Source: Octopus bimaculoides (taxonomy: Eukaryota). From it: a stretch of DNA of 34,451 bases. Positions 979-28,493 of the stretch are shown here, piece by piece. The position numbers and the translations under genes are program-made. Location of the stretch: the NCBI RefSeq assembly GCF_001194135.2, contig NC_068981.1:22165386-22199836 (forward strand), read 5' to 3'. How positions within the stretch are numbered: the stretch's first letter is position 1; the number at the start of each line of letters is the position of its first letter. Below the pieces are notes generated by a model, which worked only from the letters and a program-made list of their open reading frames with translations, was not told the DNA's origin and did not search any database.

Positions 979-3085
979 TTAGCTAAGTGTAAATGACCAA
1001 TATTATTTTAATAAGCCTATGCTTCACTGAGGGCAAATAAATGCAAGAAGTTATCTCTCATCTCTGCTAATATTTTTTTTTCTGTTCACTTCATTAGTAT
1101 GTTAACACTATCTTAATTATTACTTCTTAATGTTAAGTTATTATTAACATAATTTATGCAGCAAACATCAAAAAGCCAACTAGTTCTAGTTTAGAGAAAT
1201 CTTTTAAATTTCATATAGATATAATAAGGAAAGAAATAATCAAGATCAGTGGGTGCATAAGTAGTAGAGTGCTGGTCCAAACATCATACAGCATACAATT
1301 TCATCCCTTTACATTTTGAGTTCAAATCCCGCTGAGATTGATTAGCCTTTCATTCTTTCATAACCAAATCTGTGTCAGGCATATTTTGGAGTTAAATTAA
1401 TTAATCATGCCCTAGCATGGAAAGGAAATAAACTGACATTTACTACAACTAATGCAGTGAAGCTTTAAATCTTTGAATGCTCACTTTGCAACCATGAGGT
1501 TGAGGATTCAGTGTGTGTGTGTGTGTGTGTGTACGTGCCACCTACAACTTGACGACCAGTGATGGTTTGCAACTTAGCAGTTCAGCAAAAGATATCAACA
1601 GAATAAGTACTTGGGTTGCTCTGTTTGACTAAAACCTTTTAAGATGTTGCCCTAACAGAGCTGCAATCCCATGACTGAAACAAGTAAAAGATATATGCAG
1701 AATATGAGACAATAACTTAGCAAGAGCTATCACTGAAGAACACCACCAGCAAAAAGAAAGCATTAGTGATGTCGGTGTTGTTATAATACTCACTGTATTA
1801 AGTATGATAACTTAGCTACTGATTTTCATGCAGATGGCATACCTAAATACTCTTTCTCAAAAATAAACTAATGTTCATAGCCACACATGTACAGTATTGT
1901 ATATCTACTTAGGGTTCTCTCATCATTACTTCAGAATGTATGGTAACATTTGTTTCACTGAAGAGGACTAATAAAATTGAAACATAACCAGAGTTGTCTC
2001 CCATATTTATTGTAATAATTATAATTAGCAAGACCAGGAAATATTTCACAGAATTAATGGTAAACCTATTGGGTTATTTCTGAAAACTTTATCCAAAACC
2101 CTGAAAACATAACCTGTATTGTGTCTGTATAGAAAGATAGTAACTCATTTGCTACTCATTAAAATGTGAACGAAATTGGAATACGATGATTACTTAATAC
2201 ACTTTACATACTTTATGCACAATTTTATAGACTCAATACACAACACTCATAAAATATTTGCTCTAATTTTTCCATTTTCCCCATTAACAAAAAAAAATAT
2301 CCCATACATATGATACAACTTTTAGTTAAATTGCATATGTCTGCCATGTAAATAAGCATGAATATTTCACAGAATTGCACTTATGCACATGCGTTAAGTG
2401 ATAGATGATATATAACACTCAGTTCAATTTTAAAAAAAAATACACTTTCCACTATCCAATCACCACCACCACCACCATCATCATCTCTCTCTGTGTGCCT
2501 TTTTTTAACCTCACCATCAGAACATCACCCCTCTGCTAAAATTATATTTTTAACTCTCTTTCTCTACCTTCAACTAACTTTTATAACCACGAAATAAATA
2601 CTACGTTCCCCCTACTTCATGTCATGGACACTTCTCTCTCCCTCTTCACCTTATCCTCTTTTTGTCTCTCCTTTTTCTTTCTCCTCTCTTTCCCTTCAGC
2701 TAATCGCATGAAAGTGCTACAATTACATTCCCTCTACCTTACATCATGAATGCTTCTCTCTTCCTCTTTTTCTCTAATCATGTGAAAGCGTTACCAATGG
2801 GTTAAGTAACACAATGACAAGCAGAACTGTTATAAGATAATATTAGTCATTGACTAATACTGTCATTTCCTTCCTGCATTAAAGCTGATAGCAAAAACCT
2901 CACATACATAATACAAGGTTACTAATTATTGACAAAACACATTTTAACAGAAGTGAAACCACAACTTTGCTGGTTGAAAAGTGCTGCTAGTTGATGATGG
3001 GCACTATAGGGCTTTCCTATAAGGTGTTATCCACCCCTGATTGGAACTCTCCCGTATGACATGTACGCATGCTCAGTGACTTGCT

Positions 3086-3617
3086 TTAACAGTTGCAATC
3101 AGCTGAATGCACATTGCCAGTGACATTTGACATAATTACCCACACTCTGTGGTCAGGATTCTTTTTTTGGTTTGATGTCGGTATCGAAGGGATTACCAGA
3201 CACCGGACAATACAGTGAGAGCAGCTTTCACTCACATCGTGGTATTCGATGCTGTGTACGTGTCTGTCGTGGTAAAATATGCCACTCCTTAACNNNNNNN
3301 NNNNNNNNNNNNNNNNNNNNNNNNNNNNNNNNNNNNNNNNNNNNNNNNNNNNNNNNNNNNNNNNNNNNNNNNNNNNNNNNNNNNNNNNNNNNNNNNNNNN
3401 NNNNNNNNNNNNNNNNNNNNNNNNNNNNNNNNNNNNNNNNNNNNNNNNNNNNNNNNNNNNNNNNNNNNNNNNNNNNNNNNNNNNNNNNNNNNNNNNNNNN
3501 NNNNNNNNNNNNNNNNNNNNNNNNNNNNNCATACTGTCCATATAATCTTAAATATTTCTTTAACTCAGGCACAGTAAGTACTTCGATAGCTGAATCATCA
3601 AGCTGCTTTATATCCAT
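3086..3617 (-). CDS. Transposon-borne ORF: N-terminal SAP-like motif plus truncated SWIM-type Zn finger, interrupted by an assembly gap
   Basis: MDIKQLDDSAIEVLTVPELKKYLRLYGQY resembles the SAP consensus (LTVxELKxxLrxxGL). After the gap, ...HRVWVIMSNVTGNVHSADCNC* resembles the pre-SWIM beta strands plus CxC, and the CxH half is missing. The two halves fall in different computed frames only because the gap length is an estimate. Confidence 0.65.
3294..3529. other. Assembly gap (further gaps at 5629-6523 and 11122-11385)
   Basis: Runs of N. All three gaps lie in or abut repeats (TIR element, SINE A head, SINE B head). Confidence 1.
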
Positions 3618-4759
3618 GATAAGATGTAAAACAATAACAATGGCGTGGGTTAGCCTCTGGAAGTTTAATTATCTACATGGAGCGCCGCCTAGCCAAGGGA
3701 GATAACCTACTTATAGGAAAGCCCTATAGACAATAGATATAAAATACAGAAAACTTGGGAAGAAGCAGTTAAACTAGATCTCAGATTGCTGGGCTTCAGA
3801 GATGTAGAAATGCAGAAGTGAAATGCTCCAAGCAGACATTAAAACAGATGATGATGATAACAATGACAATGACAGTGATGAAAACAGAGCTGATAGCAAA
3901 TTAGATACTAATAGTAGTGTTATGGAAAAATACAACAAAAATGTGTGATTAATGGAGAAAACAATTTCTGGGTTGTACATCTTTTTGTCTTATGTTAGAT
4001 TTAATTTTAAATATCAATTTTCACTCAATGGTTTCTAAAACTCTTGATACATTAGGAAAATTGGCTTCCTAATATTAAGCTTAAAGCTTCAAGAGGACAC
4101 ATACAAGCAAATTTCTTATCTTTTTTTTTATGTAAATTAACGAATAATCAACAAATTAACAAATAACCATCAATATTCCAGCATTTCTATTCATCATGTA
4201 ACAGAAAATTATAGCAAAGCTGTTACCAAAAAGGAAATAGAAATGTTATGATAACATCAGCATATTAATTAGTTCTCAGATGTCTATTGTCATAACAAGA
4301 AAACCATGGGATGTATAAGTAGATTAACTTATAAAATCTCTTAAGAGAACTGTTTCAAATATGTATGTATGGATGTATGTATGGATATAAATATATATAT
4401 ATATATATATATAATTACTTTTCACAAATGAATCCTGATGAAGCAATTATAGATAACGATCCAGTTTCAAGGTCACAGACAGATAAAGAATATTTTGTTA
4501 ACACAATTTATTTCCTTCAACAGTGATACTGGAATGAAACAACTTGCAATAAACATGACTGAACTAAGAGTTTCACTTCTTTTTCTCTACTTAACATGTA
4601 ATAAATTATAATCTGACTGTCTTTTTTTGCTTTTTCTTACTGAATGGATAACTAAAACTGCCAACTGTTTCCTTTATAGTCTTGGTAACAATATGGTTAC
4701 AGTAAAACAAAATCTGCTGACACTCGTTGATGCTGCATCGAAGAGGCCAGGGAATAGAA

Positions 4760-5176: not shown

Positions 5177-5560
5177 TAAAGGAGCTGTTGTGGTAGCAGA
5201 CCACGAAACATGGTTGAAATTCCTCCTTCTTCTTCCTTCTGTTCATTGCAACACTACAAGCACTCAATTGATTATGACGATGAGGGTTCGATTTTAACCA
5301 ATCAATGGAACAGCCAGCTTGTGAAAGTAATTTTCAAGTAGCTGAGCACTCCACAGACATGTATCCTTAACATAATTCCCAGGGAGATTTGGCCTGACAG
5401 AAAATGTGACAAGACCGGCTCTTTGAAATACAGGTACAACACATTTTTTACCAGCTGAGTGAACTCATGACATTCTGATCATGAGATGAATACCCTGACC
5501 ACTAAACCACGTCTTCACTCGTCATTGTCGTCGTTGTCATTATTATTATTATTTAACATA

Positions 5561-5628
5561 GGCGTAAGAGTGGCTGTGTGGTAAGTAGCTTGCTTACCAA
5601 CCACATGGTTCCGGGTTCAGTCCCACTG
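5561..5628 (+). mobile_element. SINE family A, 5' head running into an assembly gap
   Basis: Matches the head of the copy at 12745 (AGTGGCTGTGTGGTAAGTAGCTTGC...GGGTTCAGTCCCACTG). Confidence 0.85.
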
Positions 5629-6745
5629 NNNNNNNNNNNNNNNNNNNNNNNNNNNNNNNNNNNNNNNNNNNNNNNNNNNNNNNNNNNNNNNNNNNNNNNN
5701 NNNNNNNNNNNNNNNNNNNNNNNNNNNNNNNNNNNNNNNNNNNNNNNNNNNNNNNNNNNNNNNNNNNNNNNNNNNNNNNNNNNNNNNNNNNNNNNNNNNN
5801 NNNNNNNNNNNNNNNNNNNNNNNNNNNNNNNNNNNNNNNNNNNNNNNNNNNNNNNNNNNNNNNNNNNNNNNNNNNNNNNNNNNNNNNNNNNNNNNNNNNN
5901 NNNNNNNNNNNNNNNNNNNNNNNNNNNNNNNNNNNNNNNNNNNNNNNNNNNNNNNNNNNNNNNNNNNNNNNNNNNNNNNNNNNNNNNNNNNNNNNNNNNN
6001 NNNNNNNNNNNNNNNNNNNNNNNNNNNNNNNNNNNNNNNNNNNNNNNNNNNNNNNNNNNNNNNNNNNNNNNNNNNNNNNNNNNNNNNNNNNNNNNNNNNN
6101 NNNNNNNNNNNNNNNNNNNNNNNNNNNNNNNNNNNNNNNNNNNNNNNNNNNNNNNNNNNNNNNNNNNNNNNNNNNNNNNNNNNNNNNNNNNNNNNNNNNN
6201 NNNNNNNNNNNNNNNNNNNNNNNNNNNNNNNNNNNNNNNNNNNNNNNNNNNNNNNNNNNNNNNNNNNNNNNNNNNNNNNNNNNNNNNNNNNNNNNNNNNN
6301 NNNNNNNNNNNNNNNNNNNNNNNNNNNNNNNNNNNNNNNNNNNNNNNNNNNNNNNNNNNNNNNNNNNNNNNNNNNNNNNNNNNNNNNNNNNNNNNNNNNN
6401 NNNNNNNNNNNNNNNNNNNNNNNNNNNNNNNNNNNNNNNNNNNNNNNNNNNNNNNNNNNNNNNNNNNNNNNNNNNNNNNNNNNNNNNNNNNNNNNNNNNN
6501 NNNNNNNNNNNNNNNNNNNNNNNAATATTATCTCAGTTTTAAAAAAACCTTTGATAATGTAAATAAATATGTTAATAGTTACCAGAGGTAGCAAAATTAC
6601 ACTAGAAACCAAGATATCACAGCCGTTTTACAGGTAGAGATACCAAGTTAAAGTGATACATTTTGAGAAGATATGAATAATAATAATAAATGGAGCAAAA
6701 CACATATAAGGAACTTTTATTTATATGCGTTTTGCTCCATTTATT

Positions 6746-7597: not shown

Positions 7598-7774
7598 CAT
7601 ATACATATATACAACAGGCTTCTTTCAGTTTCTATCTACCAAATCCACTCACAAGGCTCTGGTCAGCCTGAGGCTATAGTAGAAGACACTTTCCCAAGGT
7701 GCCACACAGTGGGACTGAACCCGGAACCATGTGGTTGGTAAGGCAGCTACTTACCACACAGCCACTCCTACGCC
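7342..7774 (-). mobile_element. SINE family A, full-length copy with internal (TA/CA)n
   Basis: Reverse complement of the 12745-13214 copy: A/B boxes, CTTGGGCAAGTGTCTTCTACTATAG core, internal microsatellite, and TGACTGAAACAAGTAAAAGAG end. Confidence 0.9.
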
Positions 7775-7934
7775 TATATCAAAACAAAAATTAGAAAATT
7801 TATAAAATGTGGAATCTTCATAGGTCTTGCAAGTCAATATAATTCTAAATCTATATTAACCTTTTATAAGTTATCATCAGGGAGAAAAGAAAGGAAACGG
7901 AACATAAAAACATTGACTGTAGTTGGCTTCAAAT

Positions 7935-8117: not shown

Positions 8118-10495
8118 AACACTGACTATTATTATAACAAATCAACACATTTGTCTATTTAGGGATTTCAAATAAAGTTATATTTTACATATGGAATTTT
8201 GTTTCTTTAACAATCACACAATATTTAAAATACTCAACCTAACATAAAATAGAAAGCAAATAACATACCACAGTTACGTTTTTTTTTTTTAAATATGCTA
8301 CATTTTCTTTATGAATGAATTTACAAACTGCACTGTAAATATTTGCTTTACATTTTCTTTGTTCTTTTTTGTTTTACTGGTATTTTACAAATCAAAAACC
8401 AAAAACTGGCAACTTATTTTGATATTATACATTTTTATGTTTATACTGACAATAGATATTTCCTTAACTTTAGTATAATGATAAAAAATTCCAGAGGTTT
8501 AGTAAAAGTGAAGAGAATTGTTTCCCTATACTACAAACAAGGTTTTCAGACCTATGAGGGAGGCTGAAATAGTTGTCAACCCACAAGTAATAACAGCCAA
8601 ATCTCCCTCAAAGCATATTTGAGGGAGATGCCTTAAAAAGGAAGGATACACTGGCCAATGTAGTCAGAAGTACATTTTGCTCGTAAAGACAGGGTGGTCA
8701 TGACTGGAAAATTTTAAAACAAAACACTACCAGTGCACCTATGAACATAGCAATTCTCAACCAGTTAGAAATTGCAGCCAAATATCTCCCTCAAATGACA
8801 CCCAACTGTTATGAAAAATTAATAACATTGGACAATGTTGTCCTACATACATTATGGCTGAAGAAAAAGACAGATTGTCATAGCAAGAATACCTCTTATT
8901 ATAGATCTCGCTTAATGACAGCTGATCAGAAGTTAACAATAGCATAAGGTTTCTATTATAAAAAAATAAGTTATGTATTATAGGTTGTTGCATGTGTGAT
9001 GTTAATGTATTTGGAATACTGAGAACAATAGATTTGAGAAAGTGGCTGGTGTCAAAAGCATTGATTGTTGTACATAGCAGAGTTGTAAAAGCGAATTAGT
9101 ATAAAAGGCATTGGTTGATATGGACAAGAAAGTTATGGATGAAGCTGGGAACTGAAAGTCTTAAGTAATGTATATATAAAAGTTGAAAACACGGTTGGAC
9201 ACTAAAAGTACTGAGTAGTGTAGAAATAGGACAATCAAGAAAGTAGTTGAGTACCAAAAACATTGGGTACATAAGAAAGTTTTGAAAGTGTTTTGGCACG
9301 AAAGGCTGATGTAGATAAATAAGATGACTACTTTGGGATGAATGTCTTACATAAATGGAGGATGTATGTTAAGAGAAGTTTTCTTATCAGTAGTTTATAG
9401 CAGAAGGTACTCATGGGAAAATTGAGAGTAGGCTAGAGGGGTTCTAAGAAAAGTAGCCATTAGGGATGAAATGCTGCCAGATTAACATGTATAAAAAAAA
9501 CTTGTGTAATGCAAACCCATTCAATTCTTACCAGCATGGGATAGTAGATGGTAAACACATCAACAAGGTCATTCAACTAGCTAGAAATAACAGCAAAGTT
9601 TACCTGAAGTCACACTAGCATTTTAGAAATAAAATGAAGGTAATATTACACTAGGTAATCCTCGGTACAATTATGGCTGAAAAATGACAATATAGTTATG
9701 TTTGAAAGGCTTTTTTTTTTACATACAGATCTGTCTGACAAAGGCTGCCCTGGGGCTAAACTACAACAGCCAAGACAAGAAATGTAAAAATTTAATACAA
9801 TAAAGATAATCCAAAATTTAAAGAAAAAGCCACATATTTCACCATTTAATCTAGTTTTAGATATATCAGAATTTTTTTTTATGGAAAAGGTTTCAGTTTC
9901 ACTAAAGTTAAGGATAGCTGTTTAATAAGAAGGGGTTAAGGCAAAAAATGTACTTTTATTCTATAAATCTCAGTGAAGGACAAAATAAAAGAATTTATCA
10001 GGACTCTATGTGCTGTTTCACTGCTCACTATGTAAATTTCAGCCCAAATTCAGCAACAGGAAAAAAAATAAAAAATAAATAAATGGGTAAAAATTTTTTA
10101 AAAAATGATAAACAGTTATTTAATCTTCCTGGAACTGTCAAGTTGACATCATGTACAACTTTGGCTACAAGCAAATAGTTTTGGCTCTGTGACCTTTTCA
10201 CTGTAGTTAAAATGGAAGTCAGCAGCCTGGGAAGTGCAAAACAAGAGGGCAAATGAAATACTAATTGATAGCAAAATGTGAAAACACCTGAAAGTTACAA
10301 TTAGACAGGAGATATCAGATGTCAAAATCTAAAGAGAATTTGAAATCGCAAACAATAATCTACGCTACTTGATACTTTACAAACACAAAGTATACAATTG
10401 TAGTTTGTTTGTTGAAGCCATTAAACAGTAAAAACTATTTAAATACCTTCAAGCTAATAATCCTTTTCAGTCTGGTTATGTATTCAAACAAGTGT

Positions 10496-10506
10496 AAAAA
10501 AAAAAA

Positions 10507-10544
<38 letters not shown>
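10496..10544. repeat. Poly(A)/poly(T) tract (49 bp, one interruption)
   Basis: Seen directly in the sequence. Confidence 0.95.
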
Positions 10545-10546
<2 letters not shown>

Positions 10547-11385
10547 TTTAGAATAATTACTTTGCACTGCAATAATAATGATGAAGCCTGATAGAGACAT
10601 TGTAATGTAATTCTATGTAATACCACAAATTGTTAAGCATTTACACCAAACTCAAAACTGAAGTGTGTTTACAAACAGTAAAGAAGTTCCCTCATAGATA
10701 CCTGGTGACCTAAACTCTTCAAGAAGAAAGAAACAGAAAACACACTTGCCCAGGATGCCACATAGTGGAACCTTGAACCTTGGACAAGTGTCTTCTACTA
10801 TAGTCCAGGGCCAACCAAAGCCTTGTGAGTGGATTTAGTAGATGGAAACTGAAAGAATTGAAGTTGCAAAGAAATATTTATTGACCATGTATAACTAGTA
10901 AATGGAAAAGCATGCGAAGTAAAAAGAGTTAATTTCGGCCTGTATATGTGTGTACACGATCTCATAGTAGTATATAGAGAGAGATATAGTAATGTTATAG
11001 AGAAAAGAAAGTAAGTTAGTGAAAGTGAGAGTGGTGGGACAAAACAACTGCTTCGTTGGTGAGTTACCATAGTTGTTCTTTTGTGCCTTTTCCTTTAAAG
11101 ATGGTGTTTTGTTTAGCTAGTNNNNNNNNNNNNNNNNNNNNNNNNNNNNNNNNNNNNNNNNNNNNNNNNNNNNNNNNNNNNNNNNNNNNNNNNNNNNNNN
11201 NNNNNNNNNNNNNNNNNNNNNNNNNNNNNNNNNNNNNNNNNNNNNNNNNNNNNNNNNNNNNNNNNNNNNNNNNNNNNNNNNNNNNNNNNNNNNNNNNNNN
11301 NNNNNNNNNNNNNNNNNNNNNNNNNNNNNNNNNNNNNNNNNNNNNNNNNNNNNNNNNNNNNNNNNNNNNNNNNNNNNNNNNNNNN

Positions 11386-11721
11386 AGAATCGCGGTTTCG
11401 ATTCCCAGACCGGGCGTTGTGAGTGTTTATTGAGCGAAAACACCAAAAGCTCCAACGAGGCTCTGGCAGGGGATGGTGGCAAACCCTGCTGTACTCTTCC
11501 ACCACAACTTTCTCTCACTCTTACTTCCTGTTTCTGTTGTACCTGTAATTCAAAGGGTCAGCCTTGTCACACTGTGTCACGCTGAATATCCCCGAGAACT
11601 ACGTTAAGGGTACACGTGTCTGTGGAGTGCTCAGCCACTTGCACGTTAATTTCATGAGCAGGCTGTTCTGTTGATCGGATCAACTGGAACCCTCGACGTC
11701 GTAAGCGACGGAGTGCCAACA
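11386..11721 (+). mobile_element. tRNA-derived SINE family B (head lost in the gap)
   Basis: Colinear with 20990-21360 from GATCGCGGTTTCGATTCCCAGAC to GGAGTGCCAAC. Confidence 0.85.
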
Positions 11722-12744
11722 CAGTCAGCCAGACTCAGTTCTCACTAATTGACTTTGGCTTATGGAGTTCTTGTTTTTATAACTATCTAAAACCGGCCAG
11801 AAGGATAGACATATTGTTGAGAACAATTGATTTCGTTGGCCTAGCTTTTGGTGGCCTACAAGAGGTTAGAAGGGTTAAGTGGCAAAGACATTATTATGCT
11901 TAGTGATGGCATCTAGCAAAGGTAACTGCTGTCACTCACAGAAAAGCTATTGTTTTACTGTGAGAAAAAGACTGTTGGACTGTTAAATGAAATTTGGCTA
12001 TCGAAGATCAAATCCACGCTATGCCTGCATGAAGCCACTACATATATATATATATACTTTTATATATAGTCCACTCTGTAAGGTGGTTGGTGTTAGGAAG
12101 GGTATCTAGCTGTAAAAATCTAGCCAAAACAGATAATGAAGTCTGGTGCAGTCTTCTGCCCAGCCAACCCATCAGACTGTCCAACCCATGCCATTTAATG
12201 GACGTTAAATGATGATGATGATGATATATATAAGGGCATCCAGTTGTAGAAAATTCACCTCAACAAATTCTGTCTAATCTGATGTATGCAAGCATGGAAT
12301 GGAAATCAAATGACGATGATGATGTAATCACATACAAAGAAGAAGAACAACAACAACAACAACTGCTGTTGCTGCTGCTGCTACCACAATCACCTTTAAA
12401 TCTGTCTTATTTGATTCAAACCCACAATCACCAAATTGGCTGAAAAATAAAATCAGTGTTGCATGAATAACTACCTATAAATCATAGATTTTATGCACTG
12501 ACTGAGTCCATAGTAGAAGTGACATGTCTCATTGATAAACAACTAGACTGCCTGCTCGTGCAAGAGGTCAAATCCATTGTAAGAAGTTTTGCTTTTCTTT
12601 TTGTCTTTCTTTCTATAAAACATTTTAACTTTTTACCTCAATTCACACAGCTAGTAGAGATAGGTACCAGACCATCAGGGAATAGCTTACTGAAATAAAT
12701 TGGTAGCTTATCCAGATGGAAATATATTTCTCATCTACATAATA

Positions 12745-13214
12745 GGCACAGGAGTGGCTGTGTGGTAAGTAGCTGTGTGGTAAGTGGCTGTGTGGTAAGT
12801 AGCTGTGTGGTAAGTGGCTGTGTGGTAAGTAGCTTGCTTACCAACCACATGGTTCTGGGTTCAGTCCCACTGAGTGGCATCTTGGGCAAGTGTCTTCTAC
12901 TATAGCCTCGGGTTGACCAAAGCCTTGTGAGTGGATTTGGTAGACGGAAACTGAAAGAAGCCCGTCATATATATGTATATATGTGTGTGTGTGTTTGTGT
13001 GTCTGTGTTTGTCCCCCTAGCATTGCTTGACAACCGATGCTGGTATGTTTATGTCCCCGTCACTTAGCGGTTTGGCAAAAGAAACCGATAGAATAAGTAC
13101 TAGGTTTACAAAGAATAAGTCCCGGGGTTGATTTGCTCGACTAAAGGCGGTGCTCCAGCATGGCCGCAGTCAAATGACTGAAACAAGTAAAAGAGTAAAA
13201 GAGAGAGTAAAGAG
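12745..13214 (+). mobile_element. SINE family A, full-length copy with tandemly amplified A box
   Basis: tRNA-like head, core, internal (TA)(TG)n and conserved tail. The 15-bp unit is repeated five times at 12757-12831. Confidence 0.9.
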
Positions 13215-13521
13215 TATAATATCATTGAAACTGGAACAAAGCACTGGTCCTTAAAATCACCTATCCTATGGCTGAGAAGACATTTAAATTTTACAATTGA
13301 ATCTAGCTCTCCTCCCTCTACTACAACCACAGAGAGAGTACCAGTTCTGTCAAAATTAGTTCACACAAGATACTAGACGAAGCCTTTTTACACTATCATT
13401 GGATCCTACCCCAGTGAACACAGTATAATAGAAGCGTGCATTGTAATATCAGTAGAGCTGGTTGATGGAGGGAGGGGGAAACCAGCAATAACAATGATGT
13501 GAAATTTCATGTTCACACAGG

Positions 13522-13792
13522 TACAGGCATGGCGATGTGCTTAAGAAGCTCACTTTGCAACCACATGATCTTGGGTTCAGCTGCACTGAGTGACAGTTCG
13601 AGCAAATGTCTTCTGCTGTAGCTCTTAAATGCCTTGAGAGTAAATCTGGTAGATGGAAACTGTGAGGAAGCCTATTGTATATATCTAAATATATGTGTGC
13701 AATGGGTTTTATGTATATATATCATCATCATCGTTTAACGTCCACTTTCCATGCTAGCATGGGTTGGACGAATATATATATATATATGTATA

Positions 13793-13858
<66 letters not shown>

Positions 13859-14100
13859 TGCATACATACACACGACAGGCTTCCACACAGTTTCCGTTTA
13901 CCAAATTCACTCCTAAAACACACACATATACATGTGTGTGTATATGCCTTTGTATCTGTGCTTGTACTCCACAACCACATGAAAACCCGTGTTGGTTCAT
14001 TTACATACATGTAACTTAGTGGTTTAGCAAGAAATGCTGACAGAATAAGTAGTAGACTGTAGCTTCAGCATGGCTGCAGTCCAATGAGTGGAACAAGTAG
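13522..14100 (+). mobile_element. Degenerate SINE family A copy with nested RTE tail, (TA)n and an inverted SINE fragment
   Basis: Head/core at 13522-13690, RTE tail at 13722-13770, (TA)n at 13772-13850, antisense core fragment at ~13872-13915, and tail at ~14005-14100. Confidence 0.6.
13772..13850. repeat. (TA)n microsatellite; others at ~4390-4412 and ~22935-22966, plus (ACT)n at ~18385-18460
   Basis: Seen directly in the sequence. Confidence 0.95.
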
Positions 14101-14999
14101 CTGTAAGAAACGTAGACACTCTGAATACGATGAATAGGTTAATAGTTAAGTCTAAAACTGTGTTTGCTAAAAGAGAATAGCAGCTTCGATCAACACAAGT
14201 TACATGACTGCTTTCTAAACAATGGTAAACTTAAACCTAAAATCTACTACTTGAGAGTAGGTGATGAAGTCAGTTCTGAGAATGCTTGGCCTAACAGACA
14301 AGGAGTTACAGAATTGAAATTAATGATAAGTTTTACAATAATCTGTCCAACTTGTGTTAGTCACAAAATGCAGTCATGAAGATGATGATGATGCTGATGT
14401 TAATGTTGATGATGACATTGATGATAACTGTGGTGATGAACTAATAAAATTGCTGCAATTTTTCATAGGAACAGAATATATAAAAACTATAAATTCATTT
14501 TTCATAAAATGGGCCATTTAACAAACTGAATGAATTTCTAAGTGCCACTGAATGTAACCTTAGAAACTAATATTATATATCAGTTGAACTGAAATTCTGA
14601 ATTTAAAATCTAACCTATTTATGAATTTCACACAATCGTTAAATTCTAGAACATGATCTTTTTTTTATCAAAATGTATATTATATATTTATATATATATA
14701 TACATAAATAACATTGAAAATCATTTTGTATATCATTGGAGTCTATATGTGTGTATAAATTGCTTCATAAATTCCTCAATTAAGAAAAAAGAAAAATGAA
14801 TTCACACTCAGATACAAAAGATTTTTTTAATAAAATTAATGAAGAGAAAATTTGATCTTCAACCTTCTGCAAAGCACAAGTCAGACCCACATTGAAGTAA
14901 TGTTCACATATATGGAACAGTAATGTTACTGCACTCACAGATATCCTAGACTGCATTAAAAAAAATAAGGCCATTTAACAGATTGGTCTCAACAGACAT

Positions 15000-15190
15000 G
15001 TTTCTTCTATCACAACTACAACAGCCTCTGTACTAAGCAGACTAGTTGTATACTCTATCCATTAAACCCTACTCAATGCACTTGCTTTACTGCCGCACAT
15101 CTCAGACCCTACGCAAAATACTTCATCTATCATTCCTCACAAGAACTACAAAGCTATGAAATTCCTTCCCCATTCTTACTTTCTTCTCCA
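15000..15190 (+). mobile_element. CR1-like LINE ORF2 C-terminal remnant
   Basis: Translates to FYHNYNSLCTKQ..., resembling the CR1-group FYRYYNGLCSSEL motif; heavily decayed. Confidence 0.4.
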
Positions 15191-18010
15191 TATATTGACA
15201 TACAAATGTTCAAGCTGTATATCATATGTTTTGCTCTTATAAGTCTGGGATGTCCTGTAAACATCATAGTCCTGCTTCTCCTACCATCACTAACTTTAAA
15301 CATATGGGTAGATAACACAAGGATCACTTCTTCTCGACAATGAAATACTCATTCACAGCTCATATCCCATCCTTAGATTTTTATATATTTCCTACAGTTG
15401 TTATAGATAGTAACTTGATGCCTGTGAAACTTCATGTTCCAGCTGAATAAATAGCACACACATGAACACTATAAGTGTCAAGGGACAAAAACATGGAAGT
15501 GCTCAGTAAAAGTTTGTATGTAAAATAGATATGATTTCCTATCTGGATATCAGATGGTTACCAGTAGCATCAATCTGAACAATCCCAGAGAGAATACATA
15601 GCTCCATTGTTCCTTCCCCCAACAAACATATATGATTTAATCACACTAATCTAATCCTTTACCTCAAACACTCAGAGCCAAAAAAAGAAGCTATGGGCAC
15701 AACCACTCTATTTCGTTTCCAGTCAAACTAACAAAATAAATAAATTCAATCTTCCAGAGAAAATAAATTTTAGAAGATACAAAATGTTCAATTCAAGGCC
15801 AATGGCATAGGATATATTAAAATATTGTTTCCTTCAGAGTAAAGAAAGATTTAATGATTTACAACTCAGTGTTAGTTTACAAGCTTAGCTATGATTCCAA
15901 TTTGTTTATTGAGTGTCAACCTAGTATAATCCAGAGATGTGATGTAACATCAACATCTGGCAGTAATGAAAATTTAAACTGAATTGTAAAAGGTTACATC
16001 AGCAACCTATGTGCATGTGTGGTAGATTAGTTAAGTTTAACAATATTTGTGTATAGTATAATACATTGATAATTCAGACTATCATGGCATTGCAGTGGCA
16101 GAAATGTCAGACTGAATGCTTTTTTAGTATTTAGACTCATCCCAATGTATTTAGTGTTTAAATCCTACTGAGGTCAATAAAAAGCAAAGTAGCAGGCAAA
16201 TACTGTTTAGGTTCATCAACTATGCCTCTTCTCTACAAATTTATGGCTTTATGACAAGATGATAAATCAGTCTAACATTACATTGCAACTGTCAATTTTT
16301 ATGTTCTTCATTTCTCAGACAGAGGCCAGATGGCTAATTTGATCAGGTACTGTACTAGCTGACAGTATATTTTGAGTTCAAATATATTCCTGGCAATTTG
16401 TTGCATTTATTTAAAGCAGAATACTTTTATTCTACATTGTTCCAGTGCACTTATCTGTCAGGAAATAGTGCCAAATCATTAAAAAATGTTGCGTGCATTT
16501 GTTTGTTGATCTGTCTAGGAAGAGATTGATGCCATAAAACCAGAGCTAAGTACTGACCCTTTAAAGCCATTTGATCTCAACCCTTAAGTTATCACTCTGT
16601 AGGGCTGACAAAGGCTATGTGACAACAATGCAACATTATACACCTAACATTTAAAACCAAAGGAAATATTATTAAACAAAATGGATACACATATACACAT
16701 TAGTATACAATTATCAAGTAATCAATACAGACTGTCAGTAACACCTGACACCATCACTTTAATTCTAGCAAAGGATATATAATTAAATGTAAGCAAAATA
16801 GGAGTGAGGTTGTTAGCATGTAAAAGTTTAACAGAACAACCAGTACTGAACTTCTGTACTGTTAACTCAAGAAGACTAATGGATAGAAGGAGGTTTAGGA
16901 TAGATCCCTGGTGAATGCCTACCTAACTTATATTCAGCAAAAGAAACCAAATAATTGAAGAATCATTTTCAACAACTGAATTATCAGCAAAGTCAGTCCT
17001 TGCTACACTCCACACTGTTTGTGGTCATACTCTAAACCAGTGTAACAGCCAAGGGAATTTTGGGTAGATTCTCATAATTCTGTCTTCATTGAAAGATACA
17101 TTGAACCATTAGTTTCCTGATGATTAAGGATAAAACAGCTGAAACATCATATTGTAATATTAACATTTGGCCTTGTGATATTTTAGGTCAACCTCAGGCC
17201 GACAGGCTCATTAGACCAAAGCTTGTCTTAGTTTCTATGAGCAAGAAAGCATACAATATTCCTGCTAAATGGAGCATTCAGTCTGTTACAGGATTAACCT
17301 TGAGATGTGACTGGTTCTCACTTCAACTGGGTGAAGATGAGCAACAAGAAATGAAATGTTTTTGCTCAAGAACACTACACAATATCCAGTCTGAAAATTG
17401 AAACTGCACTGTTATTATCTGAAGTTCAACACCCAAAACACCAGAGATATAACAGCAATTACGTTTTTACTATGCCCAAGGGTAATTTTATAAGAGAAGG
17501 TATTTCTGTTGACTTCAGAATGTTTCTGGTGTTTATTGTATTAGGCTGAGAGGGGTGAAAGATAATGCGAACAGGAGCAGGATTTCAACTCAGTGCCAAA
17601 CTAAATGCAATTAATCTTTCAGTAGAACCATCACCAAAATCTGTTATAATATTACTAGACTAATTATAACAATTACATTTGCACCATGAGGGCCATGGGA
17701 TGGCAGAAATATTAGAATGTATGACTAAATACTTGGTATTATTTAATTGTATTCTTTCTTATATTGTGAGCCAGGGTTCCTTTTGCTTTCTAGCTCATTG
17801 GAACTTAAAATAAGTACCAGTAATGTACTGAGATCAATTCAATATAATATGTACAGCAACATATTGCAAATATATTTCTTCTTGGTGACAACATACACTT
17901 CTTGCATCAAAATTAAAGGAAAAATGTTAGGACCAAGAATGTAAAATGAAAATTTTACCTAATGTTTATCACATCACATCTAGATGTTAATGGTAATATT
18001 AACATTTGAA

Positions 18011-23135: not shown

Positions 23136-23273
23136 ACTCTTTCATGTGCGTGTGTAGACATATATACATAAAAGTAAATGGATCCTCTGTCACTTATAAC
23201 AGAGAATATTCAATCACAGTATTAGCATGTAAGTAGCTGAGTACTCTAAAACATGTGTACCCTTAATGTAATG

Positions 23274-23353
23274 GATAGAATCAATGTGACACAGGATAAA
23301 ATCAATGTGACACAGGATAGAATCAATGTGACACAGGATAGAATCAATGTGAC
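23274..23353. repeat. 21-bp minisatellite GATAGAATCAATGTGACACAG x3.8
   Basis: Units start at 23274, 23295, 23316 and 23337, with one substitution. Confidence 0.9.
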
Positions 23354-23659
23354 CCTAGCTGGTCCTTCGAATTAGAGCCATTGTCCATTCAACAAGCTCC
23401 CACATAGATTCCATGTACCCAAGGTTTCACTCATAAAGAAAAAAATGCCATTAGTGAGATTCAACACAGAACCTCCTGATTGTGAAGTGAGCTTCTTAAC
23501 CATTTGGCACCATAGACACACACACAATGTATGTACGTATGTACGTACGTACATACATACATCACTGTTTATGTGGAAATTATGTGTGCTTGTTAGTATT
23601 CTTCAGGTTTTCACATCAATGGCTCAGATCTCATCAAGCATCCAATCAAGCAGCCCAAA

Positions 23660-24455
23660 TGCTTGAGTACTGGCACTGCAAACACATTGTGGGACACTGT
23701 TTTATTGAATGCAGAGAGTTCTGAGGTCCAAATTTTCTTTATTCGGCTGTAACATTCTTTAATGATATCCTTTTTGTTACAGGTGCCACTGTAAGATATA
23801 TTTTCACCCACCCCTAGATACCTGTAACATTCCTCATCAGATACAGGGGAAACAGTCAAATCATGAAGATGTTACTAGTCTGGCTTATAGTCTTCCCCCT
23901 TTTCACAATTATATAACAGCATTTATCCTACCAAACTCCAATCTTACATCCTTTGAGAATGTTGTAATTAGGTCAAGGCTCTTTTTCATCACATGCATAT
24001 TCTTTGCATAAAGTTTCAAGTCATCCACAAAGAAACAGTAATTTTGGTATTTCTGTTTTCTTATGAACCAGTGAAATATCCTTCAGATTTCCTTAACATG
24101 AATGACAAGGGGTTTACAGAAAGTATAAACAATATCACAGAGAGGTTGTCTCCTTGGAATAGGCCCTTGCGATATTGCATTCTATCGGTGAGAATGCATT
24201 CACTCTTTGTGTTTAATTTCAAGATGGTGGTCCACGATGAAGTCAGGTCAGCTATGGCTTTGACTATTCTCTCTGGAACTTTAACAAGTTGAAGGGCTTC
24301 TAGCATCCATGAGTGGGGAACAGAGTCAGAAGTGTTCTTGTAGTCTAGCGACATTGAAACTAGGTTCCTCCTATGCTCTCACACCTCTGACATCGCAGTT
24401 TTGTTGATTAACAATTGCTCAGCACATCCCCAGACCCCACTTCTTCCCAGCTGCT
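23660..24455 (-). pseudogene. R4/Dong-clade (RLE-type) non-LTR retrotransposon reverse-transcriptase remnant
   Basis: Motifs GVWGCAEQLLINK, SLDYKNTSDSVPHSW, KGLFQGDNLSVILF, FVDDLKLYAK, YRYLG and FAVPVL are in RT order, with stops and frameshifts. Confidence 0.8.
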
Positions 24456-24789
24456 TGTTCTGCTGTGATAATGTTATTGATTTCACAATGGTCATGTATG
24501 TATGTGTGTGTCTTTGTGTGTGTGTGTGTGTCTATTTATCTGCCTGTCTGTCTTACAACTTTATTGAAATATGACCACTTCTGTGTAGTACTGGTTTCAA
24601 TCATCTTAAAAACTGAAGAAAATAGTAGTGGATTCTCTATAGAAGATCATATAACCTCTAGCCTAAGCTATAGAAATTACATTACTGCAGTTAAAAATGA
24701 CATTGCTAAACATTAAGATTTCATTAGTCATTTAACTGCAAATCTAAGAAGTTGGCACTCAGCACATGGAAGATGGGCATCTACCAGAG

Positions 24790-25200
24790 TCTGTATGGCT
24801 TCAGAGAGAGCTGAAGGACAGGACATTTGTAGACTAACCAAGACCTTTGACACTGTCAGTTATGAATGGCTTTGGAAGATCATGGGTAAGTTTGGCTGCC
24901 TGGACAAATTCATCAGTATGGTGCAACTGATGGCGTGTTTGCTTGGATGCTGGACAATGGAGATTCTTCTGATGCATTCCCGGTCACTAACAGAGTCAAG
25001 CAGGGTTGTATACTCACACCTACACTGTTCAGCATGATGTTGGATGCCTTCTGCAACAACAGAACCAGCATGAAGATCAAATTCAAGACTGATGGCAGAC
25101 TCTTCAACCTGGGGAGGCAATAGACCAACAAAGTGGAAGAGGACTCAGTACATGACTTCCTGTTTGTAGACGACAGTCCGCTCAACACTGCCACAGAGGT
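24790..25200 (+). pseudogene. RTE-BovB-like reverse-transcriptase remnant
   Basis: FVDLTKTFDTVS..LWKIMGKFGC, NGDSSDAFPVTNRVKQGCILTPTLFS, KFKTDGRLFNL and DFLFVDD motifs, with frameshifts. Confidence 0.85.
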
Positions 25201-25499
25201 CCAGATATATACATATATATACATACATACACACATTCTTTCTATTTTATTGATGTGTGGGAAAAACAAAGGGAGAGAGACTCCTGAGGGATGATTTCAT
25301 GGTTTGTTGACTGCTCCTTAGATAAGACATACCCAGGTTCATTCTTCAATCACTATGTAAAGCAGGCATAAAATAGGCTAGCACCAAAGTGGATTGTCTA
25401 ATTTGCATACTTGTAATTTTGACATTTCATCACTAGTTTATGTTCAATACAGTGTAGACTGATAACTGTGGAAGACATAAACAGAAATGAATCCAAATA

Positions 25500-26450: not shown

Positions 26451-28493
26451 GTTTAACCCACAAAGCGCTGGGATTTGTACTTACATAGCTTGGGCTGCTG
26501 AGCACATTTTATGAAAATGAGACTGCCATGCACACATAAAAAACAAAAAAATAGTTAAAATATCTTCTTAGTATACAATAGTAGTAAGTTTTACATCATC
26601 TGAAAAGTCATTAGTTGAACTATTAGTCCTCTTGCATTATGGGGGTTATCGGAGCGTTTGAATGACATAAGACCCCACCAAACGCCCATAAATTAAATGC
26701 ATCTATCTGGGCCACGATCGTGGTCTGTCGACCTGTGCCTGACGGCCATGATCGTGGCCCGTCGTGCTTTGTGTGTTAAAGTCAGATGGTGTGTTTCAAT
26801 GTGTCTGTAAGTGTGCGCACATAGGAAGTGAGTAGTTATATCCACGTGCCAGTTTATGTGGGTGTATAGATGCATGGAGATAGTGTTATGTAGTGAGGTG
26901 TGTATAAGTGTAGTGCAATATGGAGTGAATGTAGAAGGACGAAATGCAATGTAGTAGGGTGGAGTTCGATTATCTTGACTAAACTATTTAATTCCGAAGG
27001 TGTGGAGGAGCAACTGAAGCAGAAAATAACACGTACATACATACACAGACATATATGTAAGTAGGCGAACATGTGTGCACATACATCGAAATATAATATA
27101 AACACTTGATAAGATTTATTCTAAACATTTACACGGTAATTTCGCATGTTTCAGATACCGAAAAAAAAAGCCAGAAGAATTATTTTCGGTGAATTAAGTT
27201 TGAATGAAGTCAAATAGTCATCCAAAACTTTCTATTAATCTATCAGTATATTTGTTTTACATGTGTATGTGTGTGTGACTTGATTTATGATACAACTAGA
27301 AAGATTAATAAAGTTTCTGAATTTGAAAGCAAAATTAGATCCTGCCATCACCACCACCTTCGCCTCTCCCACAATTAGGGAAAACAAAAACTAATTATGT
27401 TCTAAATGAGTCATTAAAGTACATCGGGTCTTGAATGATTATGCTGTTGAACTGTCAATGTTTCCCTTTCAAAATGATTTTCTTCTCAATTACCAAAGCT
27501 ATGAATGCATGTGTGTGTGTGAAGAATGAGAGGGCGAGTCGGGTATTTCAATGTGGAATATTTATGTAATTAAATTGAAGAATAGTTAGTTTATATATAA
27601 TTGAAAAAAGGATTCCGATACTATGTATGTGTATGCCACTTTGAAGGAAGAACCCATTAAGGTAAACTTAAATGTTCGCTCGACCTGTTAGAAAGAGCAG
27701 CTAAATTTTCATCAAATCTCTTCAACTCTCAATAAAGGAAAGACACTCTATCTACAATTCAAAGACATCTAAAATGTCTTTGACCATAGGATGTTCTATC
27801 AAGGTTGGCCTGGGTTAAACGAGGACACGTCGAGCCAGTGTAGGGGGCTCGACCTGCTAATTCGAACCAAATTTCACACAGTTCATATCCTAGTATCTTA
27901 AATAAGGAAAGAACACAGACACTGCATGTATGCATACCCCTAAAAGAGAGGAGATAGACTTTGATCCCGAATCTATATAACAGGGGTTGAGCATCAACAA
28001 CACCAGCTTGACTGGCATTCTTTCGTTAGAAGCGGCACAAAAGAAGGCCTGAAAGGCATTCTTAACAGTTCTCTTTAACTTCAGTTCATAAATATCCTCA
28101 AATAAAACTCACATAGCATATCAGACACAATTACATTTAAGTTTTAGAATAAATAGTTCAACACTTTAACTAAAGAACATACACCCACCGCTCGATGATC
28201 GATCCCTATTAGACGACGAATGTTGATACTATTTGTGCGACAGGATTGAAGTATACTATACTAACTTATGTACTGCTGACACCTCACTACCTGAAATAAA
28301 TAAATTCGAAAGAAACAACAAAACATTATTCTAACATCGAGGTATATATATATATGAATAACAAAACAGATCCCGGGTGAAGGTCTTCATATTGACCCAT
28401 ATCTTATTGTTTTTTTTTTACCCATCAAAGAAATATAAACAATAAGTTTCGGGTGGAATGCAAACAGGAAATACAAATTAAAGTTTCACTTAC

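Follow-up and report, generated by a model that had tools for sequence, protein, structure and literature searches.

ISL2EU elements are DNA transposons described only from animals. They duplicate AT on insertion, encode a transposase with THAP, HTH and DDE domains, and carry a second open reading frame (ORF) with a YqaJ domain; their repeats usually begin with GG, they are about 4.8 kb long, and four families are described from Crassostrea gigas (PMC4482050, PMC4122938, PMC9179366). Terminal inverted repeats in the group range from 6 to 259 bp, and ISL2EU-2/3/4_CGig combine a THAP + HTH_Tnp_4 + DDE_Tnp_4 transposase with a YqaJ-bearing second ORF (PMC4482050), which is the gene content that we find in the lineage described here.

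We analyzed a 34,451-nucleotide stretch of the Octopus bimaculoides genome (contig NC_068981.1, forward-strand positions 22,165,386 to 22,199,836), hereafter the window. Judged from its sequence, the segment at 3008–3725 of the window is, with a probability of roughly 90%, a non-autonomous, internally deleted copy of a transposon of the ISL2EU group (PIF/Harbinger-ISL2EU-Spy, 'PHIS'). We assign the transposase of the lineage to ISL2EU from its domains and the layout of the elements rather than from a tree that includes Repbase references. Like the ISL2EU (IS4EU) group, the octopus family occurs in an animal, measures a few kilobases, has short G-rich repeats with AT beside the ends, and includes non-autonomous deletion derivatives.

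Ends and flanks of the element

The element is 718 bp long and is bounded by 15-bp perfect inverted repeats, GGGCTTTCCTATAAG, at 3009–3023 (+) and 3710–3724 (−), with TATA on either flank (3005–3008 and 3725–3728). The repeats with their GG...CC termini and the TATA flanks are present as the initial annotation described them. Written as (A)GGGCTTTCCTATAAG, the 15–16-bp perfect repeat agrees with what is reported for ISL2EU, with GG at positions 2–3 if the duplication is AT and at positions 1–2 if it is TATA. When the flanks are included, complementarity extends over 20 nt (CTATAGGGCTTTCCTATAAG, 3004–3023 and 3710–3729), and none of 100 Markov simulations of the window produced a perfect inverted repeat of 20 nt at a spacing of up to 3 kb. 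No further copies of the repeat occur in the window beyond the two ends of the element, with up to three mismatches allowed, and tblastn with THAP, DDE and YqaJ queries returned no other match anywhere in the window.

With its terminal A the repeat reads AGGGCTTTCCTATAAG. At the transposase-side end it occupies 3008–3023 (+) and is homologous to positions 8197–8212 of L013, a longer octopus copy, where it adjoins the THAP exon. At the accessory-gene-side end it occupies 3710–3725 (−) and is homologous to positions 12796–12811 of a second longer octopus copy, L002, and to the start of L001, a Logan contig bearing an intact relative of the window ORF.

The ORF is a split exon fragment of an accessory gene

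The ORF lies on the minus strand behind a 5' leader (3618–3709, −) that runs from the repeat to the ATG and is homologous to L002:12812–12903 and L001:17–110; the probable accessory-gene promoter is predicted to lie within this leader. The start codon (3615–3617) lies 107 nt into the element as counted from the outer edge of the right repeat, and the 5' part of the exon (3530–3617, −) translates as MDIKQLDDSAIEVLTVPELKKYLRLYGQY, which contains the first SAP helix, before it runs into an assembly gap of 236 N (3294–3529). Beyond the gap the ORF resumes as LRSGIFYHD...HSADCNC, with the 3' part of the exon (3091–3293, −) ending in VWVIMSNVTGNVHSADCNC and comprising the SWIM beta-strands and the CxC half of the finger (alignment A3). 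The TAA stop (3086–3088, minus strand) is supplied by far-end, transposase-side sequence and is 62 nt from the left repeat, so that both distances given in the initial annotation, about 107 bp at the start and 62 bp at the CxC stop, are recovered by measurement.

An ORF listing returns two separate ORFs, one on each side of the gap, which are two ends of one exon on a shared strand and in the correct order. Restoring the frame requires 3n+4 nt, and the halves are off by one base at the nominal gap length. In relatives without a gap the equivalent landmarks lie 245 nt (L002) and 262 nt (L001) apart, and octopus protein copies have 36–88 codons across the equivalent stretch; a copy like P0003, with 78 codons, would need 232 nt in the gap. 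Because relatives have sequence of this length here, the gap very probably holds the remainder of exon 1, most probably the second half of SAP and the exon-1 linker.

A gap in the middle of a repeated element is a frequent point of assembler failure, and one could suppose that scaffolding linked two different copies, one contributing its accessory-gene end and the other its deleted end, in which case the 718-bp element would be unreal and the lost frame would be a symptom. We consider such a chimera very improbable, as the halves are correctly ordered and oriented, the gap of 236 is close to the 245–262 nt of relatives, the repeats together with their flanks are perfectly palindromic to each other over 20 nt and have matching duplications, and octopus proteins such as P0001, P0003 and P0004 span both halves in one ORF that ends at the same junction.

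The initial annotation had read the ORF as SAP followed by a truncated SWIM finger. On the 29-residue window fragment that is cut by the gap, SAP (PF02037) scores E = 0.024 and 14.7 bits against a cut-off of 23.9, covering profile positions 4–18 of 37, while the cut-off is passed by the intact relative P0006 (26.3 bits) and by P0046 of Mya arenaria (29.7 bits). The CxCxnCxH pattern of SWIM (PF04434) is represented in the window by CxC (C-N-C) only, followed by the stop. The CxC half is present as read, the SAP reading is supported by the intact relative, and the window SAP fragment itself falls below the Pfam cut-off. Segment 3091–3293 is 85.8% identical in nucleotides to L001:461–664 and 97–100% identical in protein to P0002, P0012 and P0013 of O. 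bimaculoides, and all protein matches to the ORF pieces are from this species.

The parent gene encodes SAP, SWIM and YqaJ

The window ORF corresponds to exon 1 of a gene for a SAP + SWIM + YqaJ exonuclease, and in this it matches the YqaJ-bearing second ORF of ISL2EU. Full-length homologues of 565–614 amino acids with SAP and YqaJ/Viral_alk_exo are common across molluscs, and they keep both CxC...CxH and D...ExK. Eleven full-length relatives have CxC-x9-CxH, and in L001 the CxH half sits in exon 2; by this residue pattern the parent gene has a SWIM-type finger, of which the window copy has half. The Pfam SWIM profile scores 17.5 bits on P0024, slightly below its cut-off of 19.6. The nuclease domain is clearer, with Pfam YqaJ at E = 3e-17 to 3e-18 in P0046 and P0024, and it is also carried by exon 2 of L001 and by L002. 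The closest solved structure is 3syy, a bacterial lambda-type exonuclease (E = 8e-6). A literature search combining YqaJ, SWIM and transposon found nothing relevant.

A deletion joins exon 1 to the far terminus

Comparison with the intact relative locates the point at which the window copy departs from its parent gene. In L001 the exon continues TGCAACTGCACTGCAGG|gtaag, and CNCTAG is followed by an intron, then by (Q)GEACNHIGALL, with which the SWIM finger is complete, and finally by the YqaJ domain; the window reads TGCAACTGT|TAAAGCAAG instead. At the junction (3090–3091, with 1 nt of microhomology) exon 1 breaks off 11 nt short of its splice donor, and the terminal ~83 bp of the far end follow. 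Here the left 83–87 bp of the window element are 93% identical to the transposase-side terminus of L013 (3004–3090 against L013:8193–8280), and the match ends exactly at 3090, the base at which the exon begins to be lost. The subterminal remnant between repeat and junction (3024–3090, +) is the region that lies upstream of the THAP exon in full-length elements. Since its left end matches the L013 terminus in this manner, the window copy is, on alignment, a deletion product in which exon 1 is fused to the far terminus. The junction and the L013 match bear out the proposal of an internally deleted, non-autonomous derivative with terminal inverted repeats, and the identity of the ORF as exon 1, together with the absence of the transposase, likewise supports the view that the accessory gene's 5' end was the part retained.

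The same junction recurs elsewhere in the genome. At least 11 annotated octopus proteins terminate in ...SADCNC at the identical position, among which P0002 and P0005 continue into the same far-end sequence as the window, and others, such as P0001, P0003 and P0004, hold both ORF halves in a single ORF ending there. As the junction is common to at least 11 proteins, the derivative spread after the deletion.

Full-length relatives carry a convergent transposase gene

Full-length elements of the lineage are 4.6–6.9 kb long, and their short terminal inverted repeats enclose two genes that converge. The SAP + SWIM + YqaJ/lambda-exonuclease-like gene starts about 100 bp from one end, and a THAP + HTH_Tnp_4 + DDE_Tnp_4 gene enters from the other. 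This layout is clearest in Mya arenaria, where the accessory gene lies within a 6,483-bp element at 10 loci whose copies are 99.9% identical, and at nine of the ten it faces a convergent annotated gene whose product bears THAP, HTH_Tnp_4 and/or DDE_Tnp_4; P0205 from this species has all three domains (E = 1e-41). This gene pair also stands within inverted repeats in Sinanodonta and Mercenaria, and neighbouring gene identifiers suggest an equivalent pairing in Pecten and Solemya. A Haliotis locus (L018), which has neither a partner transposase nor a recognisable repeat, was left out of the comparison.

The window copy itself has no transposase domains, and the ISL2EU-type transposase is found in its octopus relatives. 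L002 contains the repeat, the SAP exon, YqaJ (13630–14436, +) and a decayed DDE gene (15813–14870, −), the remnant of which is 49–61% identical to the Mya transposase. L013 contains the repeat, then the THAP exon (8323–8589, 31.5 bits), and then HTH_Tnp_4/DDE_Tnp_4 (P0238). Long copies with a THAP/DDE transposase and a YqaJ-like nuclease, which the initial annotation had proposed to look for, thus exist in octopus and in other molluscs. Neither of the longer octopus copies is intact, as the L002 transposase is both interrupted and full of stops, and the L013 locus is truncated and contains a gap. An intact autonomous element was thus not encountered in O. bimaculoides, where these two loci were the longer copies compared.

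The flanking TATA is best read as a 2-bp AT duplication

The initial annotation had taken TATA as an atypical 4-bp target duplication. Register-aligned copies from Mya point to another reading: all seven single copies with usable ends read W-AT-TGTCCTTTCCGATAAC...GGACA-AT-W, with AT on both sides, and a 4-bp reading fails among them, as where AATT on the left faces AATA on the right. Termini from octopus, Sinanodonta, Mercenaria, L014 and L001 fall into a common register of AT and then A. Because the Mya copies show AT and exclude 4 bp, the window flank is best read, by alignment of termini, as T + AT + A, that is, a 2-bp AT duplication at a T|AT|A target beside the element's own terminal A...T. 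With the register of the Mya, Sinanodonta, Mercenaria and L014 termini, the probable left copy of AT is at 3006–3007, inside TATA 3005–3008 and after C3004–T3005, and the probable right copy is at 3726–3727, inside TATA 3725–3728 and before A3728–G3729. Taken by itself, the window fits TATA/TATA equally well.

It is conceivable that octopus, Sinanodonta and Mercenaria form a sub-lineage of ISL2EU with a true 4-bp TATA duplication and repeats that start with GGG or GCC. The window, Sinanodonta L017 and Mercenaria L019 all have TATA/TATA around an inverted repeat that begins with G, ISL2EU repeats 'usually' begin with GG, and duplication length within PHIS ranges from 0 to 3 bp and is possibly 5 bp for NuwaII (PMC4482050). 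We nevertheless regard this as unlikely. The repeat aligns base for base with that of Mya, in which the transposase is 49–61% identical to the octopus remnant and AT is the only direct repeat, and AT is duplicated in all 25 catalogued ISL2EU families (PMC4482050). Moreover, exactly one AT separates abutted ends in two cases, between head-to-tail Mya copies (L004, GGACA-AT-TGTCC) and in L014, probably a molluscan contig (GTGCT-AT-AGCAC). An empty site reading CTATAG is the prediction of both the AT and the TATA models, and CTAG or CTATATAG would indicate another duplication model and leave the family assignment untouched; a BLAST search with the two flanks, covering the window, L002 and L013, returned no paralogous empty site.

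The octopus copies do differ from published ISL2EU elements in detail. The reported ISL2EU target is A|AT|T, with GG straight after AT, whereas the octopus element has A at its tip (AGGG...) and the context T|AT|A. All five octopus termini that were seen, from four insertions, read CTATAGGG, i.e., CT|AT|AG, and because this specificity exceeds that reported for ISL2EU, the CT could belong to the element. CT|AT|AG is also the sequence that arises where two element tips abut (..CCCT-AT-AGGG..). From these observations one may construct a more speculative reading, which we think improbable, in which the octopus ISL2EU uses CT|AT|AG as an unusually long palindromic target, which together with the abutted ends in L004 and L014 could point to self-targeted insertion or a circular junction intermediate in ISL2EU transposition, and in which, separately, the half-SWIM ORF is a modulator like KP (see Discussion). 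We retain the AT duplication as the best reading of the flanks of the window copy.

Assignment to ISL2EU rather than Kolobok

The initial annotation had related the element to Kolobok, as a non-autonomous member with an atypical target. The likeness lies in the purine-purine...pyrimidine-pyrimidine (RR...YY) termini, here GG...CC or AG...CT, in a 4-bp AT-only flank, and in the PD-(D/E)xK, lambda-exonuclease-like accessory nuclease of one lineage, KolobokE (PMC9587614). RR...YY termini do not discriminate, however, because ISL2EU termini have them too, and we consider a Kolobok origin extremely unlikely on several grounds. Kolobok makes a TTAA duplication, while the window is flanked by TATA and its relatives by AT or TATA, never by TTAA. 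Kolobok also has a different DDD/E transposase with a C/DxxH signature, whereas the partner here is THAP + HTH_Tnp_4 + DDE_Tnp_4, both in the elements of Mya, Sinanodonta and Mercenaria and in the two longer copies from octopus. The KolobokE nuclease lies downstream of the transposase domain rather than in a SAP-SWIM gene of its own, and KolX, which is the second protein of Kolobok, adopts a cytoplasmic-ballast fold and has no SWIM finger (PMC9587614), whereas the second protein here is SAP-SWIM-YqaJ.

Two other superfamilies were considered and set aside. A Tc1/mariner element would have a TA duplication and TAGGG repeats, but the partner is of the DDE_Tnp_4 type and the cross-species register puts AT, not TA, by the tip. 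A piggyBac reading fails on the flanks, which differ from TTAA, and on the repeats, which begin with GGG, not CCC. Two matches to the repeat pattern in fermentation metagenomes share no further homology with the element and represent chance hits in bacterial sequence.

Assignment to ISL2EU also bears on novelty. The idea of an uncharacterised cephalopod lineage largely fails because the features of the family are already catalogued, which the initial annotation had itself named as grounds for giving the idea up; the two-gene ISL2EU content is described for species including Crassostrea gigas (PMC4482050). The octopus family is absent from the published table (PMC4482050), and we found no mention of ISL2EU in octopus in the open literature. 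The window element is an ordinary deleted copy, and it adds a member to the known ISL2EU group.

Discussion

In the window copy one deletion took out all that lay between a point 11 nt ahead of the splice donor of accessory exon 1 and a point about 83 bp short of the far terminus. The two repeats and the leader were left, with a piece of exon 1 that reads into the far-end stop codon, and this accounts for a SAP motif and half a SWIM finger without a transposase. The copy would be mobile only with the THAP-DDE transposase supplied in trans by an autonomous element. The transposase would bind the repeats and subterminal sequence and excise the element, re-insertion would follow by a 2-bp staggered cut at AT in the context T|AT|A, and AT duplications would result beside the terminal A...T of the element. 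Tourist-type, MITE-like derivatives of PIF/Harbinger are similar in that they are short and non-autonomous, keep the termini for mobilisation in trans and were amplified from one deletion. The window element differs from them because part of a gene, recognisable as a 5' end and with its frame open, is still present in it, for which reason we regard it as a recent deletion derivative and not a fully non-coding MITE.

The truncated ORF is most likely a functionless relic. By analogy, one could propose that the SAP + half-SWIM ORF has been kept for a function, for example as a DNA-binding modulator of transposition comparable to the KP repressor. KP is an internal-deletion derivative of the Drosophila P element. 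The two cases are alike in that an internal-deletion copy keeps the N-terminal DNA-binding fragment of an element-encoded protein, SAP being a DNA-binding module, and many octopus copies hold the frame open from their own ATG behind their own leader. They are unlike in that KP truncates the transposase and is a proven repressor, while the octopus derivative truncates the accessory nuclease and its role is putative only. Open frames are expected from youth alone among copies that are 97–100% identical, the copies vary by internal ORF deletions (linkers of 36–88 codons) and by frameshifts, and the SWIM zinc site cannot form because two of its four ligands are missing. A retained function is accordingly quite improbable in our view, and we favor the relic.

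These findings document ISL2EU in a cephalopod and show that the SAP + SWIM + lambda-exonuclease architecture of its second ORF is conserved across molluscs. Dozens of O. bimaculoides database entries that go by 'SAP domain-containing protein' or by 'uncharacterized protein' represent accessory-gene fragments of one transposon and not host genes, and should be masked as ISL2EU derivatives. With both ORFs intact and 99.9% identity among copies, the Mya arenaria elements are apparently good material for the role of the exonuclease in ISL2EU transposition.

Termini and reading frame of the element

The element (window 3008–3725) is bounded by a 15-mer, GGGCTTTCCTATAAG, that forms a perfect inverted repeat at 3009–3023 (+) and 3710–3724 (−) in the region read (2800–3950), and the window holds no further site for it with 3 mismatches permitted. 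Counting the flanking bases, 20 nt are complementary (CTATAGGGCTTTCCTATAAG, 3004–3023 and 3710–3729), and a perfect 20-nt inverted repeat within 3 kb arose in 0 of 100 simulations under a first-order Markov model of the window. TATA flanks both ends (3005–3008 and 3725–3728), each time within the palindrome CTATAG.

The ORF lies on the minus strand. It begins with an ATG at 3615–3617, reads MDIKQLDDSAIEVLTVPELKKYLRLYGQY as far as an assembly gap (3294–3529, 236 N), and resumes beyond it as LRSGIFYHD...RVWVIMSNVTGNVHSADCNC before a TAA stop at 3086–3088, in agreement with the distances of 107 and 62 nt from the repeats given in the initial annotation. The repeats, TATA flanks, SAP start and stop at CxC described there also stand; an uninterrupted ORF is only likely, as at its nominal length the gap is out of frame. 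Base 3530 is the first and base 3293 the third of a codon, so an in-frame join requires a gap of 3n+4 nt; 236 is not such a number, and at this nominal length the ORF listing gives two ORFs. Assembly gap lengths, however, are estimates only. Each half is one end of a single exon, and both lie on the same strand and in the correct order; gap-free relatives have 245 nt (the longer octopus copy L002) or 262 nt (the Logan contig L001) between the same landmarks; and annotated octopus copies hold 36, 54, 75, 78 or 88 codons in this stretch, the 78-codon copy requiring 232 nt across the gap. The ORF is therefore likely continuous, in a frame that the 236-N length does not fix. Several copies of the octopus family carry differing small deletions in this stretch of exon 1.

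The accessory gene

The ORF pieces return 21 matches, all of them Octopus bimaculoides proteins, mostly named "SAP domain-containing protein", except for one unnamed Logan protein (P0006). The latter is encoded on L001 (1,990 bp), where exon 1 runs ...SADCNCTAG|gtaag into a 250-bp intron, after which (Q)GEACNHIGALLHAL completes the SWIM finger with the CxH absent from the window, followed by a YqaJ-type PD-(D/E)xK nuclease (ITSSSFG..., ASPDGLV, LIEIKCP). Used as a query, this second exon finds 1,413 relatives; the full-length ones are bivalve and gastropod proteins of 565–614 aa with SAP and YqaJ/Viral_alk_exo domains, several of them named "SWIM-type domain-containing". An alignment of 11 full-length proteins shows conserved CxC-x9-CxH and D...ExK residues, and the window fragment aligns up to the CxC. 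Pfam places SAP above cut-off in P0006, in the Mya arenaria protein P0046 and in P0024, another relative, and the latter two also have strong YqaJ matches; SWIM in P0024 falls slightly under cut-off (17.5 versus 19.6 bits). Because the gap truncates its SAP domain, the window fragment (29 aa) scores no better than E = 0.024. The solved structure nearest to the nuclease is a bacterial lambda-type exonuclease, 3syy.

Octopus copies and the deletion junction

Two longer octopus copies retain parts that the window element has lost. On chromosome CM046608.1, L002 has a terminus (CTATAGGGCTTTCCGATAAG at 12792) followed by the leader and SAP exon, YqaJ (13630–14436, +) and a decayed DDE gene (15813–14870, −), where an unrelated insertion cuts the element. 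Its SAP exon is broken by a palindromic insertion of ~130 bp (12985–13117, ggtaatttttcagattaacaccc...gggtgttaatctgaaaaatcacc). TAAGATTA is repeated at the flanks of this insertion, which resembles a small hAT-type MITE whose duplication is 8 bp long. L013, on chromosome CM046603.1, has a terminus (CTATAGGGGGTTCCGATGAGG at 8193), a THAP exon 110 bp inward (8323–8589) and HTH_Tnp_4/DDE_Tnp_4 (9977–10534).

Window 3004–3090 is 93% identical to L013:8193–8280. This identity ends exactly at 3090, and from 3091 the window is accessory-gene exon 1, 85.8% identical to L001; judged from these alignments, the window copy is therefore a single internal deletion that fuses exon 1 with the terminal ~83 bp on the transposase side. 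This bears out the proposal that the element is a deletion derivative keeping the 5' end of the accessory gene. The junction, with 1 nt of microhomology, lies 11 nt before the exon 1 splice donor, and the TAA derives from the far-end sequence, hence the end of the ORF halfway through the SWIM finger. At least 11 annotated octopus proteins terminate in ...SADCNC, and in P0002 and P0005 the stop is lost and the frame continues through that far-end sequence (...SKSLSMRTCHTGEFQSGV.NTL). The junction is therefore common to these copies, and it was after the deletion that the derivative multiplied, the signature of trans-mobilisation.

Gene pairing and family assignment

In Mya arenaria, a 581-aa SAP-SWIM-YqaJ gene is present at 10 loci, and at 9 of them a gene of 311–521 aa with THAP, HTH_Tnp_4 and/or DDE_Tnp_4, transposase domains that Pfam confirms, lies downstream on the opposite strand. 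Over a common unit of 6,483 bp, the Mya copies are 99.9% identical. At least 10 copies have an intact 581-aa ORF and several a 521-aa transposase (L005–L012, element at 9913–16397); the family looks active now or very recently. The same pair lies between inverted repeats in Sinanodonta woodiana (~4.6 kb) and Mercenaria mercenaria (~6.8 kb), and adjoining gene identifiers suggest it in Pecten and Solemya. The THAP/DDE and YqaJ genes that the initial annotation proposed to look for in long copies are thus present: YqaJ with a decayed DDE gene in L002, THAP and DDE in L013, and both genes in the three bivalves.

This two-gene element fits ISL2EU as defined in the literature, a group confined to animals whose members average ~4.8 kb, make AT duplications and have repeats that usually begin with GG; they pair a THAP/HTH/DDE transposase with a second ORF that carries a YqaJ exonuclease domain (PMC4482050; also PMC4122938, PMC9179366). 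The original assignment to Kolobok was mistaken; there the duplication is TTAA, the transposase is of another kind, and the second protein, KolX, has a cytoplasmic-ballast fold. Nor is the lineage new: the window element adds a member to a catalogued group that includes four families in Crassostrea gigas (PMC4482050). A search of the open literature found no paper linking ISL2EU and octopus.

Target-site duplication

Mya copies read W-AT-TGTCCTTTCCGATAAC...GTTATCGGAAAGGACA-AT-W, with AT the sole direct repeat, present on both sides of all seven single copies with usable ends. Termini from outside Mya align with these base for base: AT-AGGGCTTTCCTATAAG in the octopus window, AT-AGGGCATTCCAATAAG in Sinanodonta, AT-AGCCCTTTTCGGAAAG in Mercenaria, AT-AGCACGATTCAATAAC in L014 (ENA contig ERZ26168041) and AGCACTTTCCGATAAG in L001, which begins at the tip. 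Taken by itself, the window fits a 4-bp TATA duplication, as initially annotated, equally well, since CTATAG is the empty site expected from either model; that reading is nonetheless unlikely, as it fails in Mya (for example, left AATT versus right AATA) and the other termini are in the same register. Abutted ends also argue against it, being spaced by exactly AT both in a Mya tandem pair of head-to-tail copies (L004:16390–16400, GGACA-AT-TGTCC) and in a 28-nt perfect palindrome between the SAP-YqaJ and THAP-DDE genes of L014 (8195–8250, ..CGTGCT-AT-AGCACG..). Such ends could reflect insertion beside an existing copy, or be left over from a circular or tandem intermediate. The most economical reading of these sequences is the canonical 2-bp AT duplication, with element tip A...T and target T|AT|A.

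All five octopus termini seen (window left and right, L002, L013 and P0005, in which the ORF runs on through the terminus as ...KESPIV) read CTATAGGG, and the octopus flanks differ outside it. CTAT precedes all octopus termini seen (window 3004–3009 and 3724–3729; L002:12792–12799; L013:8193–8200), giving the full context CTATAG, of which Sinanodonta and Mercenaria share only T-AT-A. The octopus family may have its own 6-bp palindromic target preference, on a small sample of four insertions.

Other features of the window

A 77-nt inverted repeat (94% complementary, 5552–5628 and 7707–7783) encloses ~2.1 kb, including an assembly gap (5629–6523) that cuts its left arm; its arms could be long terminal repeats belonging to a different DNA transposon, or a short repeat that occurs twice in opposite orientations. 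At 28428–29150 (−), a 241-aa open frame with a VTT-domain match (TVP38/TMEM41/TMEM64-type membrane protein, E = 4e-7, slightly under the Pfam cut-off) is probably an exon of a local host gene. Reverse-transcriptase fragments among several broken ORFs (RVT_1, E = 3e-6 at 24064–24354, −) mark 23600–25300 as a decayed non-LTR retrotransposon. Tandem arrays occur at 12753–12834 (15/30-bp unit AGTAGCTGTGTGGTA, 5.5 copies) and 23273–23353 (21-bp unit GGATAGAATCAATGTGACACA, 3.9 copies), with long (AT)n and (TATG/CA)n tracts near 13.7 kb.

Proposed mechanism and implications

By analogy with PIF/Harbinger-type cut-and-paste elements, a THAP-DDE transposase acting in trans would bind the repeats and subterminal sequence, excise the element and insert it through cuts staggered by 2 bp. 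In the intact accessory protein, SAP and SWIM are the probable DNA-binding parts, and the lambda-exonuclease-like domain probably resects 5' ends, at the excised element or the donor break; the role of this ORF is stated as unknown in PMC4482050. The truncated window ORF is most likely a relic, because its zinc site is without two of the four ligands and copies differ by deletions inside the ORF. For annotation, the consequence is that many octopus "SAP domain-containing proteins" are pieces of an ISL2EU transposon.
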